Shown in pieces: positions 35,099 to 49,531 of a DNA stretch of 64,000 nucleotides. The translations under genes and the position numbers were made by a program. Under the pieces are notes generated by a model that was not told the origin of the DNA, made no database searches, and was given only the letters and a program-made list of their open reading frames with translations. The stretch comes from Blastocystis sp. Blastoise (Eukaryota; Protista; Bigyra: Opalinata): assembly GCA_039096225.1 (NCBI GenBank), contig JBBPEB010000009.1:1116001-1180000 (forward strand). Direction: 5' to 3'. Numbering within the stretch: position 1 is the first letter of the stretch; each line of letters starts with the position of its first letter.

Positions 35099-36362
35099 TT
35101 ATGGAATTTCATTTATATGCTCTTTAGAAAAGCAGACGAAATCTTCTAAACATTTTGTGACACTTGTTGTGTCCATCATAAAAAGAAAACTTTATGTTTG
35201 ATATAATATAGCTAAATATAGAGATAGAATTTTTTCGGTATCAATAATTAACCAAAGTATCTCAATTATTTGTGATAATTGGTTTACAACTAAATTAAAA
35301 AGCCTCAGGAAAGAGACTAAGTATATATTACTCATACTATATTTAAAATAGATGTCTAGTCTATTATTATTTATATATAGTTAACTATCAGCGATTTCCA
35401 TGAATAAAAATGGCCTTCTTTGTCACGTTTTGCTTTTTGGATTTAAGATTTTTTCAGAACAATTAAACAAGGAAAAAAAATACCCTCCACAGAATAAACA
35501 ACAAAAAGCATAAAAAAACCCAATGAAGATTTTTAGTATATACACGATGATTATTTTTGGTCGCTCTTTGAATAATTAATTTAAAAACTATTTAATGATT
35601 TAAATTTATCTTTGTTATTTTCATAAACTACTCTATACGCAACTATGGCTTTAACCATTATAACAAAAATTAGAAAACAAAACGAGTAAATTGTAAATAA
35701 ATTCTAATTGTGAAATAACATTAAAACATTTTTTTAAATCTATCTACTGGTGGTAATTACTTCTGTCTATAAATACTCTATATAAAAAAAATAAGTTAGA
35801 ATTATTCAAATCAATAAATAGTTATACATACCTAATTCACATCGTTAAAGATAGCTGTCATTTCAATGCACGTTACAATTTATATGAAGCAACTAAAGAA
35901 AGGGATATTGATAGTTAATTAAATAATAGTAACAAAGAATTATAGAAATACGAAACAAAATACTTGCTACCCTTGAATAATCAAACACCTGACATTCTAT
36001 ATAAAAAGATGTTATGATATTTTACAACATTATATACATTAACAAGATAATTGATTCGAAAATTGATAGACACCTAGACACAATAATACTTTAATACTGT
36101 TTAAAAGTAAAATACATTTTCAAAGAGTATAGTTATTGAATATGTTCATTGATATTTTTGTTGTGAGATAAACAAAGCAATAAAATAAAATATGAATGTA
36201 TGGTGTAAAACAAAAAATAAAGTCAGCATAAAAATATATTCTATTAAAAATACTTAGCCAATCATTTTAATATAAATCAAAAGAATTATAGTGTAGAAGA
36301 TAAATAGCCAATCATTATGAAATAGAATAAAGGAATAAAGAAAAATAGAATAATTCAAAGAT

Positions 36363-37149
36363 TTATCCTGAGAATGGTAGAATCTCTTGGCATTTCTGCA
36401 AATTGTTTATTATTGTTTCATAATGTATATATGTATAAGAACTTGTATTTGGAAAAGGACTAATTGGAATCCATTTGCCAAACTAAAAATAAAGAATATT
36501 ATATAAAAGAATGATAAAAGAAACGTATAAAAGCATACAATCTCAGAGGATCCTGAGTCATGTATTTCTATTTCTCTATCTAAATGAAACCCAAAGAATT
36601 GAGGAAACGAGCCTTTTCGACGACGATTAGTAATACATTCACGAACACAAACCATTATAATTTCATCACTATAATTATCTTGTTTCTCATATGTATGCAA
36701 ATAAAGACGAGCAAGACGACAAATATATATGTAGACCTCTGACTCATGATCTAAACATATATTATTCTTTTTTAATGTAAACATGGATTTTGCATTTTTT
36801 CGTATAGCTTCAGGTAAGCAAAAAGGAATTACCTTTATTATAGTCTATTGAATTAAACATTATATATGTATACAATAAATACTTTTAATTTATTTGAATT
36901 CAACTTCTTGTTTCTAAATGGAATATCTCTTTTAATGGAAAGTCTTCTTATCATAGCCTCACATTCTATAAAAACATCTGAGCAACGAATAGTCTTTTCT
37001 AAATAATTATTACCAAAGAATTAAATTGAAATACCATTTGTCTCTTCACCTTTTAATTCGTTAAAATAATGTTCGATAGCTTTATAGATATCTTCTTGAA
37101 GACTATCAATTTTATTTCTTTCTAATGAAGATAAAGTAGATGATTCCAT
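36363..37149 (-). CDS. Small spliced accessory gene of the CACTA element (second ORF; TnpA-like role inferred)
   Basis: Four exons join in frame: MESSTLSSLERNK...EETN|EKTIRCSDVFIEC...NKLK|TIIKVIPFC...VRECITNRRRKGSF...SSEI|FGKWIP...PFSG TAA (36363). Head-to-head with the transposase. Confidence 0.6.
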
Positions 37150-37265
37150 GAAAAAGAAAGTAAAAGAAAAAATATATATGAAAACCGTGATAATAATCAG
37201 TAAAATTCTACAGAAGAAATGAATTTTATTTTTTTTAATAAACATTTTTCATAGTATTTGTTATA

Positions 37266-40200
37266 ATGAATAATTATAGACATAAGATATCTAATAAGAA
37301 GAAATCAGGAATAAATAGTAAGATATAAAAATAAGAAATAACATTAATGATCATAGCAACATTATTATCTGAGAGACATGACACTTATCATAGATCAACT
37401 ACCTTGATTGCAGATGAAATCAACAATGTGAATATTTCTTTAAATAATGAGAATACACCAATTGAGATAGAAAATGGTGATATTATAAGGCAGATCATGC
37501 AACTCATCTTATCACAAAAAGTATACGGTTTATATTAATATATATATAATATATACCTCTCTTTTAATATAAGCCATTATTATATTTCTTCAACACAATA
37601 CCTACTAATCATTTTATCTAGATAATTCATGAGAAAGTGAGTACAAAAGAGGATGCCATGAATGACCTAATTTTTGAGTGTTGGAGAAAACTAGGTATTA
37701 GCTTTCAAAAAGTAGCAAATTTGTATGAATTAATAAATAATTTAATAAGCGAATTTGACATTGATCTTCCTATATTAACAATACCCAAATGCTCACAAAA
37801 TATTGTAAGAAAATATGTTAGAAATTCTATATATAAGCCTCTTCATATAAATATATTTTCATGTAATAAGTGTCATGTAATACATACATATAATACAATA
37901 CAAGCATATCCATTATTTAAAGATATAACATGTAGTAATCCTATATGCAACGGAAATATATGTATATATTTCTAGAAGTAGTTATATATATATATATATA
38001 TATCACAAAACATTATATAATTCTTATATAGGTAACAAACAAGTTATTATTCCACTAATTCCCCGACTTCAAGCCATACTTTCATCTCCATATTATATAC
38101 AAGATATTGAATTTTATCGAAAAGATGAGATAGAACAAATATATAGTAGTCTTAATAATAGTAACCTAGATTCAATGATTCAAAATATACCAAATTACAT
38201 GCTAGGAATGAATTATAAATCATATCTTAGAGATTGTGCCAATAATGGTGATATCATTTTATCATTCAACGTTACTACAGACGGTATATCGATGTTTGAT
38301 AAGGCTGTTACTAAGCAGAATAGTTCTTCAAACCCAATTTTGATCCAATTATTAAATTATAAGAAATTTAGAAAGTACGATAAAAGAGAGTTCTATATGT
38401 ATACTTGCGTAGATGAGCCTTCTATTGACTTATGCCTTGATATACTGATGGCTGAATTCAAGTTACTCCAAGCTGGAATAAACATGGATATTTATCTTGA
38501 TGGGAGATTACAGAATAGGAAAGTAGTTGGCATATTAATTAATACATTTGGAGATTCTGCAGCATTATCTCATGTAGGTAAATTTTTAGGTCCATCATCT
38601 ACATATCCTTGTAGATTTTGCGATATGCAAAGCGATAAGCATGCTGAACTATTACATGAAGGTATGAAGTGTTCCTATTCTCATGTATCTATATCAGTTC
38701 AAAAGTCGAATACTGGAGTCCATATATATATTCCATGTTATCAGTTTCTTCTTAAATGGATTAATAAAACGAATACTTATATAAATAGTAAACCATATAT
38801 CATGTACAAATCCTTTTCGAAGAGTTGTAAGTTATATGAAGATTCATTTACTAATATTAGATACAATCCATATTCTAAAGAAGTAATTACTGAAATAAGA
38901 AGTAGTAATAATGATAATCCATCCTACAATAAAGGAATAAAAAAGGTAAGAAGTACTTCTGAACAACTTAGCTACTTTAATCCTTCAACATCATTTCCAT
39001 TAGATACTATGCATCTTTTTGGAAATGTTTGTAATACTTTATTAAGTTTATTATTTGGATTCAAGAAGGAAAATAAAAATAAAAGTAAGAAGAAGGAAGA
39101 AAGTAATAAAAGTAAGAAGAAGAAAGAAAGTAATAAAGGTAAGAAGAGGAAAAATAGTAATAAAGGTAAGAAGAAGAAAGATAGTAATAAATGTAATATG
39201 AAGGAAGATAGTAATGAAAGTAATATGAAGGAAGATAGTAATATGAAGGAAGATAGTAATGTAAGTAATATGAAGGAAGATCAATCGAATAAAAAGACAT
39301 CCTCAAATGAAAAAGAAAATGATAATACTAAAGAAAACCAGAGGAAACCATTTGAACTAAACCCAACAAATAAAAGCATTTTGGAAACACGTATCTCAGC
39401 AGTTAATAGTATATATGGGGATTGTGAATACCAGTTTCGTTATATACTAGATGAAACAATGTTCAACAAAATAAATACACACACGAAAATATTTTTCGTT
39501 TCTAAAATATTACCATTAATATTATATGATTTTAATTCAAAAGACAGTCCTATAATACCTCTTTTCGAATTATTAGCTTCTATTATTCATGATTGCCATA
39601 TATATAAAGCGAATGATATCGAAGACTTGGAAATGCTTGAAAAGAAATGTTTTACATTCACATTTCTCTGTGAGCTTATACTGCCAAAGCAATTAATTAC
39701 ATCTCAAATACATTCTATCCAGCACTTGGTCTCATGTTTAAGAAATACAGGAAGCTTATCAGTAACATCAACTTGGAAATCAGAATCATATTATTCTAAA
39801 ATTAAGCACTCATCTCATTCTCGCAATGAATTTAATATTTCCTGCTGCATGTCATCAATAACCAAAGAAACAATTTTAGTATCTAATGATCATCAAGGAA
39901 GATCCAATAACAGAAACGAAATAAGTAATATATCTCAACCATGTGAAGATATGCAACATGATAAGAATACTATTTACTATAATCCTGTTGGAAACAATAA
40001 AACATATATATATTCTGCTAGTTGTTCTCATTATTCTGAACCGATAGAGATGCCAGATAAAGTACTTTTCCAGTTTCTCAAAATAATTCTTGAAGAAGGA
40101 TCTCAAACACTTATTAATTATCTAATAGATGGTATTATTGGTTGGACAGGAGAAAATAGAAATTATAATTTAAACTTATTTATAGAAAATAATTTTCATC

Positions 40201-41025
40201 AGTTGAAGGATAATTATAATAAACTATCTGTTAGTTTCTATGATAGAATCCTTGTTAATAACAAACTTATATATACAACCAGCCAAGTTGATGATGGTGT
40301 ACATAGAATAGATAATTCATACTTGATATATTATGAAAAAGAAAATAATCATCAGCCACATCTTGTAAAGGCCTTAAAATATATAAAGGTGAATGATTCC
40401 ATATTTGTAATGAATTACGATTATGGTCCAGCATTATCATCTGCAACAGGATTATATTATCACTTTATGGACAGTCAAGGGTTTCAAGGATTCCAAAATA
40501 TTAACATATTTCTTGCTTCAAACGTTTTAGTAATGGATATACATACAAATAAAACCCCTGATGACATTCTTTGTGAAGTATATACTTATATTAATTAATA
40601 ATAAATAATAATATATTCATATTAGTATCATAATAAATACATCGTATGTATATTAGTAATAGTTATTTAGTATCATTTTTTATATTTCATTGTGTAGATA
40701 AATCTTTTAATTACTAATATAATAATTATTATAATGAATTCATTTTACTTTTATATATATTTAATTATCAGAATGATTACCTTCATCTTTATATGCATAT
40801 ATATATTCTTAATACTAATTATTTATATATTATTAACTATAAAAAATTTTGTCAAATAATATCTTTTATTGTTTCTATACTTTATTCTTCTTTATATAGG
40901 AAAAACAAACCAAAGAAAAGACTATCCAAAGGTCTACGTTGACAGTAACTTCAGAAGATGTTTATACTTATACAACATTTATACCAAAAGACTACATGCA
41001 TGTGAATGGGTACATTTCCATGTAA
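37266..41025 (+). CDS. CACTA/EnSpm-type DDE transposase (Tnp2/TnpD-like), five exons, apparently intact
   Basis: CxxC...CxxxxC zinc motif, IIPLIPRLQAIL, SFNVTTDGISMF (D1), GDSAAL...G...YPCRFC (D2), PLDTMHL, and HSIQHL...TGSL...TWKSES (E). The exons splice in frame from ATG 37266 through ORFs 37347, 37637 and 38175. The probable last exon is 40900-41025; otherwise the stop is at 40598. Confidence 0.88.
39062..39290 (+). repeat. 24-bp coding tandem repeat (KKKxxSNK / NMKEDSN units) inserted in the transposase
   Basis: Recurrent AAGAAGAAAGAAAGTAATAAAGGT-like units that grade into AATATGAAGGAAGATAGTAAT units. Confidence 0.8.
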
Positions 41026-42899
41026 ATACTTATAAAATTATATGTATAATCGTATTTAAACTTTGACTTTTTTATAATTTATATTTTTAATGTATAATTT
41101 CATACATATTATCTCTTATAATCACTTTTTGGTTGTTCTTGTTATTAATGAATTTCATAACATAAAAGCAGATCATAGTAGGTTTTTCTAACTTAATTCA
41201 ACTTCATAATAGTTAAAATTACAGTGAATAAATGTTTTAAATAATACATAAAAAAATGTTCAAATTCATATCTATTTACAACTTTTTTCACCAATAATCT
41301 ATATATATGAAGCAATAATCATCGAACTTTTCAAGTATCTAATATTATATCGAATAATATATATATTATATTGATTTGTACTAAATTCATTCATATTTAC
41401 TGAATATATCCTTATTTCATTGTATTTTTCTATCCATAATAATAAAGCATCTTATTTAAAAACTATTACATGTTCTATTCAAAATAGAATGAGCATAGAC
41501 TTATTTAATTTAATCTTCTAAATTCTCATATATTTTTTTAAATGTTTAATATATAATCCTATTTTATTGTTATTAATTCATAAAGTAATTATTACAGTAA
41601 TATATGTTTTCTATATATTTTACTAAACCATTTTCAATAACCATATTAGTAGATCTTTTGTTACTAATAAATGAAATATTAATGGCAAACCATAATGAGT
41701 AATATATGATTTTTGTATGAACAGTCATATGATGAGAGTAAGAAAAGAGATAGAAGAAAAAATAATTAAAAGGAGAATCTGCATAGCAATACTATATTAT
41801 AATCTCATTAATCTATAGTATTATTAGTAGTAATAATAGACATTCATTGATAGTTGTGATAGAACTATTTATGATCTAAGATCAGTAGAGGTTATAAAGA
41901 AAGTAATAGTACTTCAAGTATTATTACTTATGGTATTCTTTCTTTAAAGATATGATTACGAAAACCGAATTACATATTGATATCATAACATTTTTGGTAT
42001 TTAAATTAATTTAAAAACTGTTAGTAAAGGAGGTACAATCATTTAATGACATAGCATAATATTTTAATTGATTCAAAATGTAAGAGAAATTAGAAAACAA
42101 GAATAGAAAACATAATTATAATCTTATCATTGTTCTTATTAATAACTACTATTATACGTAGTATTAGGAGAAGAAAGAGGAAAAATATAAAAGGTATTGC
42201 ATAGTAGTATATTCCAAATATATAAGTATTAACAATATTAGAAGCAATAGACAGAAAAAGGATTTGGTGTATAATAGTTTAAGTAGCAGAATATCATTAG
42301 TATTAGATATAGTATTATTGGAATAAGAATGTAAAAAGACATGACACATATAAAATATCTTTAATATCATTACAACTAGACATAATAATAACGGTAGTAG
42401 TAGCACAAAATATTTCTATTATATTTAAGAATTCTTATAATTATTATGAGCATGCGTATTATAACGAAAACAAGAAGAAAATTGTAGGAGTTTAGTAATA
42501 GTAGTAGTGTCATCATCAGCTTATTATATAAAAATACAAGGAGACATAACAGTATGGGTATGTTCTAACAAGAGGAAGATTATTTTGAAGAAATATTTGT
42601 ATTACGATGAAAATATAATCAGTTGTTAGAATAAAAAGGCTTATACTAGTAATACTATTATACTTCATGATCTTCTGATTGTTATATAGAGAAGACTATT
42701 AATATTATTGATTCTTTATTAGTATTAGTATATGTACTATTATTTATAATCTTAGTATCTTAGTATTTGCATCCAAATTACTGATTCTTAATATAGCATT
42801 CATTCTTCTTCATGCTTTATTATTATTCTTATTGTTAATACACTTGATATGACTTTTGTTTTTGTTATTAATAACTGTAATATACAGCAGTAATATATG

Positions 42900-45545
42900 G
42901 AAGTAATAATATTTAAGGATGTAGTAATAATAGTATCATAAAGAAGTAATATTATCATAAAGAAGTAATAGTATCATAAAGAAGTAATAGTATTATAAAG
43001 AAGTAATAGTATTATAAAGAAGTAATAGTATTATAAAGAAGTAATAGTATCATAAAGAAATAAAAGTATTGTAAAGAAGTAATAGTATTGTACAGAAGTA
43101 ATATTATTATAAGGAAGTAGTTACATTATAAGGAAGTAATAATATTATAAGTAAGTAGTTAAATTATAAGTAAGTAATATTATAATGAAGTAGTAATATT
43201 ATTATTATAAGTAAGTAGTAACATTATAAGTTATATTATTAAAATGAAGTAATAATATTGTAATGAAGTAATATTATAAGTAAGTAGTAATAATATTATT
43301 ATAAGTAAATGGTAACATTATAAGTTATATTATTATAATGAAGTCATAGTATTATAAGGAAGTCATATTATAATGAAGTAATAATATTATAAGGAAGTAA
43401 TAATATTATAAGGAATTAATATTATTATAAGTAAGTAGTAATAATATTATTATAAGTAAGTAATAATATTATAATGAAGTAATAGTATTATATAGATGTA
43501 ATAATATTATAAGGAAGTAATAGTATTATAAGGAAGTAATAATAATATAAGTAAGTAGTAATAATATTATTATAAGGAAGTAATAATATTATGAGGAAGT
43601 AATAGTATTGTAAAGAAGTCATAGTATTATAAGGAAGTAATAGTATTATAATGAAGTAATAATATCATAAAGAAGTAATATTATTATAAAGAAGTAATCT
43701 TATTATAAAGAAGTAATAGTATTATAAGGAAGTAATAGTATTATAAGGAAGTAATAATATTATGAGGAAGTAATAATATTATCATAAGTACTAACATTAT
43801 AAGTTATATTATTATAGGTAAGTAATAATATTATAAGTAAGTAGTAACATTATAAAGAAGTAGTAACATTATAAAGAAGTAGTAACATTATAAAGAAGTA
43901 GTAACATTATAAAGAAGTATTAATATTATAAAGAAGTAATAATATTATAAGGAAGTAATAGTATTATAAGGAAATAATAGTATTATGAGGAAGTAATAAT
44001 ATTATAAGTAAGTAGTAATAATATTATAAGTACTGACATTATAAGTTATAATATTATAAGGAAGTAATAGTATTATGAGGAAGTAATAGTATTATGAGGA
44101 AGTAATAGTATTATAAGAAAGTAATAGTATTATAAGAAAGTAATAGTATTATGAGGAAGTAATAGTATTATGAGGAAGTAATAGTATTATAAGGAAGTAA
44201 TAGTATTATGAGGAAGTAATAATATTATAATGAAGTAATAATATTATAAGTAAGTAGTAATAATATTATAAAGAAGTAATAATATTATAAGGAAATAATA
44301 ATATTATGAGGAAGTAATAGTATTATAAAGAAGTAATAGTATTATAAGGAAGTAATAGTATTATAAGGAAGTAATAATATTATAAGGAAGTAATAATATT
44401 ATAAGTAAGTAGTAATAATATTATAAGTACTAACATTATAAGTTATAATATTATAAAGAAGTAATAATATTATAAGGAAGTAATAATATTATAAGTAAGT
44501 AATAATATTATAAGTAAGTAGTAATAATATTATAAAGAAGTAATAGTATTATGAGGAAGTAATAGTATTATAAGGAAGTAATAGTATTATAAGTACTAAC
44601 ATTATAAGTTATATTATTATAAGTAAGTAATAATATTATGAGGAAGTAATAGTATTATGAGGAAGTAATAGTATTATAAGTACTAACATTATAAGTTATA
44701 TTATTATAAGTAAGTAATAATATTATAAGTAAGTAATAATATTATAAGGAAGTAATAGTATTATAAGTAAGTAATAATATTATAAGGAAGTAATAATACT
44801 ATAAGTACTAACATTATAAGTTATATTATTATAAGTAAGTAATATTATTATAGGAAAGTAATAATATTATAAGTAAGTAGTAACATTATAAGGAAGTAAT
44901 AATATTATAAAGAAGTAATAATAATATGAGGAAGTAATAATATTATGAGGAATTAATATTATCATAAGTAAGTAGTAATAATATAAGGAAGTAATAATAT
45001 TATAAGGAATTAGTATTATCATAAGTAAGTAGTAATAATATTATTATAAGTAAGTAGTAATATTATTATAGGAAAGTAATAATATTATAAGGAAGTAGTA
45101 GTAATAAGGAAGCAATTACAATATTATTATAAAGAAGTTGTAATAATATTATAGGTAAGTAATATTATTATAGGTAAGTAATAATAGTATTATAGGAAAG
45201 TAATAATATTATAAGGAAGTAGTATTAATATTATTATAGGTAAGTAATAATATTACAGGTAAGTAATAATATTACAGGTAAGTAATAATATTATAGGTAA
45301 GTAATATTATTATAGGTAAATAGTAATAATATTATAGGTAAGTAATAATATTATAGGTAAATAGTAATAATATTATAGGTAAGTAATAATATTATAGGTA
45401 AGTAATAATATTATAAGGAAGTAATAATATTATAAGGAAGTAGTAGTAATAATTTTATAGGTAAGTAATAATATTATAAGGAAGTAGTAGTAATAATAAT
45501 AGTATAAGTAATAGTATTATAAGGAAGTAATAATACTATTATTAT
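42900..45545. repeat. About 2.6-kb degenerate minisatellite, basic unit 19 bp (AAGGAAGTAATAGTATTAT), inside the transposon
   Basis: The 19-bp period is clear at 42991-43050 and 44060-44210. Variant units (AAGTAAGT, AGGTAAGT, AGTACTAACATTATAAGTT) recur. All frames are closed. Confidence 0.92.
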
Positions 45546-45808
45546 CGCCAAAAAAGTTAATTTCATCATTCATATTATTCTTCTTAGTTATAACATTAAT
45601 ATAATTCTTATCATTATTATAAGATAATATATTATTATTATAATTAGTACCTATAAGGCACTCATACTTATATTCTTATTATTTTCTTTACATGATTCTT
45701 TTTATTCTTATTATAATATCATAAAATCTAGAAGTGAGAAATAAAATTATGAAAAGCAGAATCTATAGAATGTAAATAAATATTTCTGTGTAACGCTTGT
45801 AATAATAA

Positions 45809-45842
<34 letters not shown>

Positions 45843-45844
<2 letters not shown>

Positions 45845-47190
45845 TATATGTTTCAAGTGGATATTGAGTAGTTGATATATCTAATAGTAATTGAGAGCAG
45901 GCATGATCATTACAGAGATTAAGGAATATATCTAAGCAATTTTTAATAATCACTGTATTATCTTCCCAATAACGAAGGTTATTCAAAATTACATCGATTA
46001 AGTGATTTAATATATTACTCTTCTTACATCTAGACAAAAAATAAGATAAATCATCAATGCAATATTGATAAATTATTTATATATATATTTAATTTCTATC
46101 TATTAATACATAGCCAATAAATATATATAATTGCTCTTTTCGAGAGGAATTCATATCAAGAAAGGTATCATCAGGAAGACGCTTCTTATTCTCATATATA
46201 TATCTATATTTCTGAATTGTTCAAAGAAAATTTAATGATAATTCCATGTTGGAATTAATCCTACTAAATCAATTCTATATATATATATTTATACATATAT
46301 ATATATACTGTAAAAACGAAAGCAAAAACAAATGTAATAATATATAATAATATATATAATAATATATAATAACATATTATAATATAGTTTATATATATTT
46401 ACGTTAAGTCAATAACTAGCATTATGTTTAAGTTGAATAACTTCTGTACCTATTAATGATAGTTATTTTGAACCTGTGTTTGCTGAATACTTGATTAATA
46501 AAAACAGTAACAACAGTATTACAAAACCACGAAAGACAGCCTATAAATAATTGTTTAAGAATATATATATTGCTCAATAATTGTTTTATTCGCCAATTCT
46601 TGATAATCTGTAGTATTTACTCATACTTTAGAAAATTGATAAAGAAGGGTCTAGAAATACACGAGAATAGAAGTAATAAATATAATAATGAATATAAATA
46701 TAAACGTATATTTAAATGCAAATATAAACAAAAAAAGAGATTATTATAATAATACTATATACATTATATTCTTCATTAAGAGGATCAAAGCAGTTACATA
46801 TATATGTAGTATTCACTTAAAAAAATATCTGACTATTTGAGGTAATTGTTGCATTTCTATGGCTAAGCTTTCTGTATCACTAAGAGGGTTATTCATATCA
46901 TCATCAACATAATCATCTACACTTTCCATTTTACCATTAATATATGCTTGTATTAATTGATGAACAGATTCATTAAAACAACTTGTATTATCAATATCTG
47001 AACCGATCTGAACATAACGTTCAGCACAAATCAGTCAACTCCATAAAGTAAGTAAATAACTAAAAGAATTACTACACCATTGCCAATTCTTAAAGGAATC
47101 AATAGTAAAATTTGTTAAAAGACGAATAAATTCACTATATCGTGGAGTTCTGAAAAGTTCTGATAACTGGAAATTAGCCTAAAGAAATAG

Positions 47191-47237
<47 letters not shown>

Positions 47238-47525
47238 TTATAGTATAATATATTCGTATATAGAATTCATATAATACATTAATAATAATAATAATAAATA
47301 TATCTATATACTTTAAGTTTTCATAATAATTGACAGAACATATGATAAGTATCTTTATCATCAAATGCATGACTACGAGTTAATTGTTCAAAAACCTCTT
47401 CAATTAATAATTTTAAGAATTCTAAACGAGATTCAGGTTTAACAAAGAGATAACGTCTCATAGAAGTCATCATTAATAAACAATGTAAACAAGTGACTGT
47501 AGTAGGAGGATAGCAGGAGTAATAA
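45843..47525 (-). pseudogene. XPO7: Internal fragment of exportin-7 (RanBP16/17-like) with introns and premature stops, captured inside the CACTA element
   Basis: CLHCLLMMTSMRRYLF..ESRLEFL...DTYHMFCQLL*KLK|ANFQLSEL..PRYSEFIRLLTNFTIDSFKNWQWCSNSFSYLLTLWS*L...AYINGKMESV...NPLSD and LNNLRYWEDNTVIIKNCLDIFLNL are collinear with XPO7 as recalled (SVRRSLF, YHEFCRLL, NYQLGEL, YLLSLWQRL, TNLKYW). TGA at 47321-47323 and 47035-47037. No N- or C-terminus found. Confidence 0.85.
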
Positions 47526-49531
47526 CTAGATAAAGAAGATAATGATGACAATAATAATAAGTATAATAATAAGTATAATAATGATAGACATCTATTATAT
47601 AATATATATATATAATAATTACTATACAATGATTTTTAGTAAAGTTAAATAAATGAATAAATACAGAAAAGTATGTAATTAAATCAGAACAAAACATGAA
47701 TTTAATTTTTGCACAAAAACATATTCTGTTCTTGTTTAATATGATTAGACAAGCCGTAGACAATAGTAACAATCATAAAACTTAACCGATGTAGTTAATT
47801 CACAAAAGAATTGTGGCAGCATAACTTCTTAAATACTCTAATAAATATCCAAAACCATTATTGAAAGGCATAACTTCATTAACAACTGTAAACATCGAAA
47901 GGAAAAACTAAAAAGACAACAGATTAACAACAACATATAAAAAAATCTATAAGATTATAAAGTAATACGTGTAGCAATTATATCTATAATAATCAAACAC
48001 ATTTATCAATTTAAAATAAATTATGACATTTTGTTAACAATAATTATAATAAAAATTCTTCGTTTAAAAAAAACGAAGAAAACTCGCTGTTTTTTACAAA
48101 AAAATTTTTCTTCGTTTTTTAATCATTCATTGACCTAATTCAAATGTTACAAGCTGTTCGTCATATAGAATAAAAATTAGTTGTGTCTTCTTACTTTTAA
48201 ATAAAAACTAACAAATTATATTGATTTACTCAAAATCGATATGAAATAATTTGGGCAACTATAATGTTTATAGCATATAATTTAGGGTGATTATGCTATG
48301 ATACAATTGTGAAATCAACACACAAACAAATATTTGAATCTGATGCAAAATATTCTATTGACGCATCATTAAGGGTGTCTTGTGGCTCATATACTCATAT
48401 CTGATATGAAATGAGTCTTAAAACAATTTTCAATTATATTTAGACATGTTTTAATTCAAAAATAGAAATAGACCAAGTTTTGAATGGGAAAAACATTCCC
48501 GTAAGTATTTCAAAAATTTAAGACTCTGGTCTGACTGTCCATCAAACAAATAGGCTCGGTTATTTTTTTTCACTGAAAAAAAAATAACAAAATTTGAATT
48601 TTTGGCTGAAATTTGGTTTTGAGCCATAGCGGCCATTTTATTAATTTTTATTCGTATATATGACTCTTAAAAATCTTTTACTCCAAACACAACTATAAAA
48701 AACTTTATAATATGGACCCGATGAATTAACCAAATTTCGACTTAAAACAAACTAAAAACGTTTTTGATATTATGTGACATTCTAAGACGAGAAAATAATG
48801 TCAATTTTTTAATAAAATATGTCTAATATGGTTTTTTATACCTAAGAAAAACTAAACTGAAAAAAAGTGTCAAAATTTTGTCAAAATTCACGATTTTTGC
48901 CTAAGTCGCTGAAGTAAATCTCATTCCATTGGTGGAACAAGTTTTGAACCAAAATCAACCAATCAGATACATTTAATAATTAAAATATCGCTGATAGTGG
49001 TTTATTATAATAGTTTACATATATATATAGATATATATAGTATATCCTCTTAGTTATTTTTTAAACTAAAAGATATAATATTTATTTGTATATATATTAA
49101 TTATCCAATTTATTCATCTATTACTAAGAAAATTATATTAGTATAAATATTTTATTTATTATTAATTGTTAAATAGGCTGCCTTGTTTTTATTATGAATA
49201 AAAATCTTTATATAGTATATATGTAACTAAATTAAATATGTATAAAATTTTTATGGTGATAAAAAAAATAAAAAGAATATAGATAAAAAATATATATAAT
49301 TTCTATATTGTTAAATATATTATTTTTATGAAGAACAGTATATAAGAATAATTAAATCGACTAAATAAAGAGAAAATAATTAATATTATAGTATGCAAAA
49401 TAGAATATAAGTATTCTAATTAACTTTTAGATAGGGTTTTATAATATAATATTAAAAAGAAAAAACATACAAATATAATTTTTAAAATGCATATATATAT
49501 TTTATGAATAGATAAAATAATTATATATATC

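Follow-up and report, generated by a model that had tools for sequence, protein, structure and literature searches.

Positions 35383-48999 of the DNA analysed here raise the question of whether a 13.6-kb interval that contains host DNA can be a complete, self-mobile transposon in the genome of a gut protist and, if so, to which superfamily it belongs. The window, by which we mean the whole 64,000-nt stretch under study, comprises positions 1,116,001 to 1,180,000 (forward strand) of contig JBBPEB010000009.1 in the Blastocystis sp. 'Blastoise' assembly GCA_039096225.1. Our analysis indicates that 35383-48999 is very probably a full-length, autonomous class II (cut-and-paste) EnSpm/CACTA transposon of the CMC group, standing in a deep clade. 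The element is present in multiple copies with defined ends and target site duplications (TSDs), and it carries intact genes for a CMC-type DDE transposase and for a companion protein, both of which are transcribed.

The host, a tortoise gut isolate, has a genome of 33.3 Mb in 34 contigs with a GC content of ~21%, and the GC content of the window is likewise ~21%. Tortoise Blastocystis isolates span 26.0-33.3 Mb and 21-23% GC (PMC12129017); for repeats and transposable elements, that paper gives bulk percentages only and no named families. A full-text literature search for Blastocystis together with CACTA returned primer sequences as its sole matches.

Ends, target site duplications and copies of the element

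A reading of the window made from its sequence only had proposed a full-length 13.6-kb, cargo-carrying CACTA/EnSpm element with 13-bp terminal inverted repeats (TIRs), a canonical CACTA at the right end and an exact GTT TSD. These termini were read directly at both junctions (Table 1), and the proposal as a whole is borne out by the ends, the 3-bp TSDs, the many copies at unrelated sites and the CMC-type DDE transposase. The left and right TIRs agree at 12 of 13 bases. In the window copy and in one other the left end reads AACTA, and in the other seven of the nine full copies it reads CACTA.

The exact 13-mer of the ends occurs 21 times in the genome, against ~0.13 occurrences expected from base composition. 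Pairing these sites yields eight intervals of 13,613-13,621 bp, a further two of ~7 kb and one of 29.8 kb, with one lone end remaining; the full-length copies number nine. The junctions of ten copies (eight full and two short intervals) were read, and all ten show a perfect 3-bp TSD, with eight different triplets among them (in element orientation: GTT, GTT, ATT, ACA, ATT, ATC, TTG, CAT, TAA and TTT). The expectation that copies with the same ends would be found beside different 3-bp TSDs was clearly confirmed.

A multiple alignment of the nine copies contains only 16 variable columns over 13.6 kb, a figure that rests on assembled sequence; long-read polishing can homogenise repeats, and the near-absence of substitutions therefore gives a lower bound on divergence. 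The variable columns are homopolymer or microsatellite lengths, one 3-bp difference in the minisatellite, one small complex site (47679-47680) and the element's first base; none falls within the coding sequence of the transposase or of the companion gene, ORF2 (open reading frame 2). Outside the nine copies, the segments 35383-36400, 41026-42893 and 47630-48999 find only short matching pieces of at most 89% identity. Because the copies are nearly identical and elsewhere leave only such short matches, the family seems to stem from a single, very recent burst. The window element's own latest move was probably very recent, and the family may be active at present.

Near-identity over 13.6 kb could also be explained by recent duplication or by homogenisation during polishing, in which case the copies would stem from segmental duplication, gene conversion or an assembly artefact and not from transposition. 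But in every copy the similarity ends exactly at the 13-bp ends, the flanking DNA of the copies is mutually unrelated, and each copy read has a perfect 3-bp duplication of its own. The copies are also spread over six contigs in both orientations, and one of them, on contig C13, holds a nested 16.2-kb insertion that the others lack. We regard such an origin as extremely improbable and keep to transposition.

The C13 copy is the 29.8-kb interval among those listed above, the element being split at its positions 909-916 by an insertion of 16,219 bp. This insertion (G000:C13:748006-764224) is private to the C13 copy, has the ends CAGGG...CCCTG and is flanked by a perfect 8-bp TSD, GTGTAGAA; it looks hAT-like, and the other eight copies of the element act as its empty sites.

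Two short elements share the exact 13-bp ends and have perfect TSDs: G000:C25:298834-305686 (L020, 6,853 bp) and G000:C4:1815729-1822806 (L013, 7,078 bp). Neither contains a match to the transposase or to ORF2. The ORFs of L020 include a Cys-rich motif that is PHD-like by eye, and some of their peptides are met again in the tail of the annotated protein P0019.

The lone exact 13-mer is a left end at C24:490453; 6.6 kb away, at C24:497017, is a CACTA-like right end that belongs to another subfamily. This pair was rejected as a further copy and left out of the count because its flanking triplets differ (ATT vs TTT); it may be a chimeric or decayed element.

The A at the first base of the window copy is found again only in C4:337890-351502. 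The two copies also have in common a GTT TSD and the 6-nt left flank ATAGTT; by hand arithmetic from base composition, the chance of an identical 6-mer flank is ~1e-3. In both, the left junction ATAGTT/AACTAT is a perfect 12-nt palindrome (window 35377-35388; G000:C4:351497-351508), and the outer flanks are unrelated. Origins of this palindromic junction by P-nucleotide addition or hairpin opening were worked through by hand, and none fits the observed TSD. At the least, the pair shows that the A variant has transposed once, and the first base is therefore not essential.

The transposase and its affiliation

The open, multi-exon DDE transposase gene recognised in the first reading was upheld: an open frame of 889 codons (37929-40595; the ORF noted earlier had 807 aa) goes together with upstream exons and one RNA-supported 3' intron. 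The four-exon model forms a single open frame, and all of its introns have the form GTAT..AG. The intron at 40578-40899 (plus strand) is seen in RNA and the peptide of exon 4 (40900-41025) matches the C-terminal tails of paralogs, so the stop codon at 40596 is normally removed by splicing. Introns 1 (37521-37621) and 2 (37962-38031) were placed from GT..AG sites, reading frame and alignment with the N-terminus of paralogs. Homology searches and folding were run exon by exon, the joined models being used only for frame checks. In none of the nine copies is the frame disrupted, and its RNA was detected both as contigs and through one splice junction.

The catalytic and zinc residues lie at D 38280, D 38553, CxxC 38610/38619, DxMH 39003-39014, HxxxH 39711/39723 and E 39783, and the D, D, C/C, H/H and E residues vary little or not at all within the clade and in its Transposase_21 relatives. 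The arrangement of D, D and E with CxxC and HxxxH is the CMC signature as set out in PMC12730594. For the N-terminal Cys-rich region, the only Pfam match was a weak one to RYYR-CCHC (E 0.0013), below the cut-off.

An exhaustive profile search of 1.84 billion representative proteins recovered only 28 relatives of the transposase. Ten of them were looked up: the six with a named source all come from this Blastocystis genome, and the four most distant belong clearly to Pfam Transposase_21 (profile-search E 8e-8 to 8e-4). Judged by the relatives looked up, the clade is seen only in the 'Blastoise' genome, barring these four distant proteins. The large ORF finds its best database relative in an NCBI protein of Blastocystis sp. 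Blastoise, and contig C28 encodes that protein at 99% identity. Within the genome, at least 45 separate loci match the transposase clade at 33-57% identity, many of them with open frames of 800-1600 codons, and by these matches the clade is a large, diverse expansion here. The nearest paralogous transposase is ~51-56% identical.

Membership of the Transposase_21 family, which the sequence-only reading had put forward for checking, held at the level of profiles and failed in direct comparison. Neither the 807-aa ORF nor the 889-aa frame gave a direct match to Pfam Transposase_21 (PF02992) at E values up to 1; the paralogs P0019 and P0020 scored 28.8 and 27.7 bits, respectively, the cut-off being 28.6. 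When the profile of the clade was aligned with that of the four Transposase_21 proteins by hhalign, the probability was 99.5% (E 2.2e-22, 248 columns), and the alignment pairs the motifs TTDG, GD...CRFC and DxMH. The AF2 model of the core has a mean pLDDT of 76, with the low-complexity insert disordered. In a Foldseek search of the PDB with this model, the first 46 matches were all RAG1, BbRAGL (amphioxus) or HzTransib (Helicoverpa), with E values down to 7.5e-5 and TM-scores of 0.35-0.47.

The missing direct Pfam match would also suit an element of another superfamily with a 3-bp TSD (PIF/Harbinger, Zator or Academ) whose CACTA-like ends were a coincidence. Yet the profile-profile match to Transposase_21 spans both D residues, CxxC and DxMH, the HxxxH followed by E is conserved, and the leading fold matches fall without exception in the RAG1/Transib group; we consider this assignment very improbable. 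Of the features examined for CMC, CACTA-type ends, a 3-bp TSD, D-D-E with CxxC and HxxxH, and remote Transposase_21 homology were found and only the direct Pfam match was lacking, and the element is a member of CMC by its ends, its TSD, its enzyme signature and its two-gene layout.

Several observations concern the existing annotation. Transposon genes are labelled 'hypothetical protein' in the genome annotation, and some of the models look chimeric. In the deposited NCBI model P0019 the transposase continues into a C-terminal tail, and peptides of this tail are found again in the L020 cargo; in another NCBI model, P0011, several hundred residues of tandem repeat stand within a transposase.

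Table 1. Features of the element and its junctions (window positions; TSD, target site duplication; TIR, terminal inverted repeat)
Feature	Position	Strand	Basis or remark
Left TSD copy, GTT	35380-35382		Same triplet at 49000-49002
Left 13-bp TIR, AACTATCAGCGAT	35383-35395	+	First base A here
Abundant spliced RNA, no long ORF	35837-36168	-	Introns 35893-35951, 35997-36037, 36074-36115
ORF2 companion gene, exons 36883-36954, 36539-36844, 36363-36482	36363-36954	-	165 aa; divergent from transposase
Spacer between divergent start codons, 392 bp	36955-37346		Presumed bidirectional promoter, from gene layout
Transposase gene, four exons 37347-37520, 37622-37961, 38032-40577, 40900-41025	37347-41025	+	1061-aa model
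N-terminal Cys-rich motif C-x2-C ... C-x4-C in exon 2, putative zinc finger	37862-37948	+	CxxC...C kept in paralogs
DDE catalytic core	38280-39785	+	Conserved columns, hhalign, AF2 fold
In-frame 27-nt tandem repeat giving a Lys/Ser/Glu-rich disordered insert	39063-39281	+	TRF; pLDDT <50, model residues 347-432
AT-rich spacer	41026-42893		Complete only in the nine copies
Minisatellite, 19-nt unit TATAAGGAAGTAATAATAT, ~138 units, strong positive GC skew	42894-45539		TRF
Host exportin-7-like gene fragment, exons and introns, pseudogene	45802-47629	-	PF25795 (TPR_XPO7), E 2.8e-8
Right-end non-coding module, 540 bp	48459-48999		Common to many CACTA-like families of this genome
Right 13-bp TIR, reverse complement of CACTATCAGCGAT	48987-48999	-	Canonical CACTA
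Right TSD copy, GTT	49000-49002		Same triplet at 35380-35382

The companion gene and transcripts of the left end

The divergent second gene of the first reading is spliced and expressed, its 165-aa ORF being read from 36954 to 36363. RNA evidence comes from a public run, X1, which contains half of the words sampled from the left 6 kb of the element (35383-41382); the canonical splice joints and adapter tails of its contigs identify it as cDNA. Two further RNA runs, X2 and X3, contain none of the element, which is no proof of absence. The RNA contig of ORF2 spans 36269-37063 at a depth of ~20 and has introns at 36483-36538 and 36845-36882.

The main exon of ORF2 finds 39 matches outside the nine copies, at 21-52% identity. 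At all of the 21 loci that were cross-checked, a paralogous transposase lies ~1.3-5 kb from the ORF2 match on the opposite strand. Because a related transposase adjoins at every one of these loci, ORF2 is, by comparison of paralogs, a conserved companion gene of the transposase clade and not part of the cargo.

The AF2 model of ORF2 is confident (pLDDT 82). Pfam searches with 21 paralogs, Foldseek against the PDB, ESM Atlas searches by features and by shape, and VIA-align gave no Pfam, sequence or clear fold match; a word-indexed protein search with the ORF2 exon, which covers proteins of 56-178 aa, gave no match either. The best rows of the fold comparison are winged-helix DNA-binding domains with Z scores of 4.2-4.7, below the reliable level. 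ORF2 might, with low confidence, be a DNA-binding accessory factor whose role resembles that of the TnpA/ORF2 proteins of plant CACTA elements.

Closer to the left end, downstream of ORF2 and transcribed in the direction of that end, a spliced RNA contig with canonical CT..AC joints reaches a depth of ~941, against ~20 for ORF2. It contains no ORF of at least 60 aa, and its DNA is present only in the nine full copies. This RNA may stand on its own as a non-coding transcript, or it may be the strongly over-represented 3' portion of the ORF2 transcript. Scans of the element for tRNA genes and for Rfam families gave nothing credible.

The cargo

A captured fragment of a host gene had been claimed for the element, and the claim stood with a correction: the fragment is exportin-7-like (PF25795, ~80% nucleotide identity to its host counterpart), occurs in each of the nine copies and has already decayed to a pseudogene. 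Two exportin-7-like host genes exist, at G000:C4:1305008-1306793 and G000:C25:99642-100936, and only the C4 gene is close to the fragment. The ~80% identity to the C4 gene extends over exons and introns, and rises to ~93-94% in the exons. The differences between fragment and host gene are distributed 16:12:32 over the three codon positions (chi-square p 0.004), and the fragment has two stop codons at positions where the host reads G and R. An internal segment of the element is thus derived from a host gene that is still present elsewhere in the genome. Taken from these alignments, the exportin-7 capture is genuine and predates the burst, and the fragment is now a pseudogene. The combination of a transposase with captured host DNA in one element, also part of the first reading, holds in that an apparently intact transposase gene stands beside this exportin-7-like fragment.

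The long minisatellite was likewise found as described (Table 1). All nine copies carry it, and its only length variation is one 3-bp difference seen in two of them. Both the minisatellite and the exportin-7 fragment are passengers inherited by the entire set of copies. In the AT-rich spacer (41026-42893), the last ~200 bp resemble common low-complexity repeats of the genome.

The right-end module

The non-coding module at the right end of the element recurs at 74-80% identity at 31 loci outside the nine copies (40 were scored out of 86 candidates). Both short elements are among its loci, and most of the 20 loci that were fetched show a CACTA-like ...AGTG end. The other CACTA-like families that share the module have ends unlike the 13-mer of this family.

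The absence of codon periodicity together with 1-nt indels rules out a protein-coding exon. Nor was a convincing consensus RNA structure found when the plus strand was folded (RNAalifold -15.6 kcal/mol, with almost no covariation term). From its conservation, the module is most likely a cis-acting region that would hold binding sites or a promoter. Within it, at window 48929-48966, lies a short inverted repeat, ATTGGTGG ... CAACCAAT, of which both arms are changed in other families (TGGC ... GCCA). A conserved hairpin or a palindromic binding site is possible for this repeat.

Proposed mechanism and autonomy of the element

We propose that the transposase would bind the ends of the element through its N-terminal zinc finger, the companion protein or both, and would excise the element in the manner of RAG1 and Transib. 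The same enzyme would then cut the target with a 3-bp stagger and re-insert the element there. The short elements with the same 13-bp ends would be moved in trans, probably by this enzyme as well, and the right-end module would act in cis.

To the missing direct Pfam match have to be added further points that weigh against a CACTA element moving itself. That the element's own enzyme is its mover is a deduction; neither an empty site nor an excision footprint nor a fresh insertion was seen. Introns 1 and 2 of the transposase gene are without RNA support, and the lone contig over that part of the gene (37604-38281) is unspliced; transposase RNA is scarce altogether, with contig depths of 2-11. 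Subterminal repeats of the plant CACTA type are absent: in the outer 700 bp of both ends, no 9-12-mer with at least three G/C occurs three times or more. The scarcity of substitutions between the copies could also be exaggerated by polishing-driven homogenisation.

The unspliced contig and the scarcity of transposase RNA would suit a true CACTA element that is not autonomous in practice, its transposase or companion protein being inactive or the gene mis-spliced, with the burst having been driven in trans by a paralogous transposase. The genome does contain dozens of paralogous transposase loci whose open frames are long, and the 540-bp right-end module, being shared between families, could permit cross-mobilisation. 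However, beyond this family the exact 13-bp end turns up only in the two short relatives and at one lone end, other families having different ends; both reading frames and every catalytic residue are intact in nine of nine copies; and even the closest paralogous transposase shares only about half of its residues with this one. Since the 13-bp end is specific to this family, we rate a paralog-driven burst as unlikely, and we prefer an element that is mobilised by its own transposase.

Comparison with known systems

The element is similar in many respects to plant En/Spm of the Transposase_21/DUF4218 (TnpD) type. Both have 5'-CACTA...TAGTG-3' ends, a 3-bp TSD and a size on the kilobase scale; both encode a large DDE transposase with CxxC and HxxxH ahead of the catalytic E, together with a second protein; and both tend to pick up fragments of host genes and to give rise to non-autonomous relatives with the same ends. 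The Blastocystis transposase differs in being too diverged for a direct Pfam match. The second protein of En/Spm arises by alternative splicing of a single transcript, whereas that of the Blastocystis element is the product of a separate, divergent gene and has no recognisable similarity to TnpA. No reiterated subterminal motifs were found here, a long module conserved between families being present at the right end only, and the host is a stramenopile gut protist.

With Transib and RAG1/ProtoRAG (6cg0, 6b40, 6pqx), the predicted catalytic core shares its overall fold. In contrast, sequence identity is ~9-11%, the TM-scores are just 0.35-0.47, the ends are different and there is no RAG2-like partner. 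Transib and RAG produce TSDs of 5 bp, whereas those of the Blastocystis element are 3 bp.

Pack-type, or gene-capturing, CACTA elements are known from plants. They resemble the present element in carrying a host gene segment that retains its introns and is amplified together with the element. Unlike them, the Blastocystis carrier still encodes a transposase, and its fragment is a decayed pseudogene with exons ~6-7% diverged from the host gene.

The architecture of the element is accordingly that of a normal two-gene CACTA transposon, and its novelty lies in its lineage and its host. Of the earlier suggestion of an unusual and possibly undescribed family, the new lineage and host remain, and 'unusual' overstated the case with respect to layout. 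New are the element family, the exportin-7 cargo, the RNA evidence, the RAG1-like predicted fold and the conserved right-end module. A bolder reading, which we offer tentatively and consider rather doubtful, is that the family is active today and that the companion protein, the abundant left-end RNA and the right-end module would form a regulatory or targeting system new among described CACTA elements.

Significance

The tortoise Blastocystis isolate holds large, intact-looking DNA transposons that have moved very recently, which is relevant to the larger size of these Blastocystis genomes and to their annotation. The element adds a deep branch to the CMC/Transib/RAG1 enzymes that standard domain models overlook. 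In this branch, both the two-gene layout and a non-coding module at the end are conserved and open to testing. As an apparently active cut-and-paste element with defined 13-bp ends, it is also a candidate starting point for insertional mutagenesis and transgenesis in Blastocystis. To our knowledge, Blastocystis is without transposon-based genetic tools of this kind; should the family prove to be active and equipped with novel regulatory parts, it would provide the first native, usable transposon tool for this organism.

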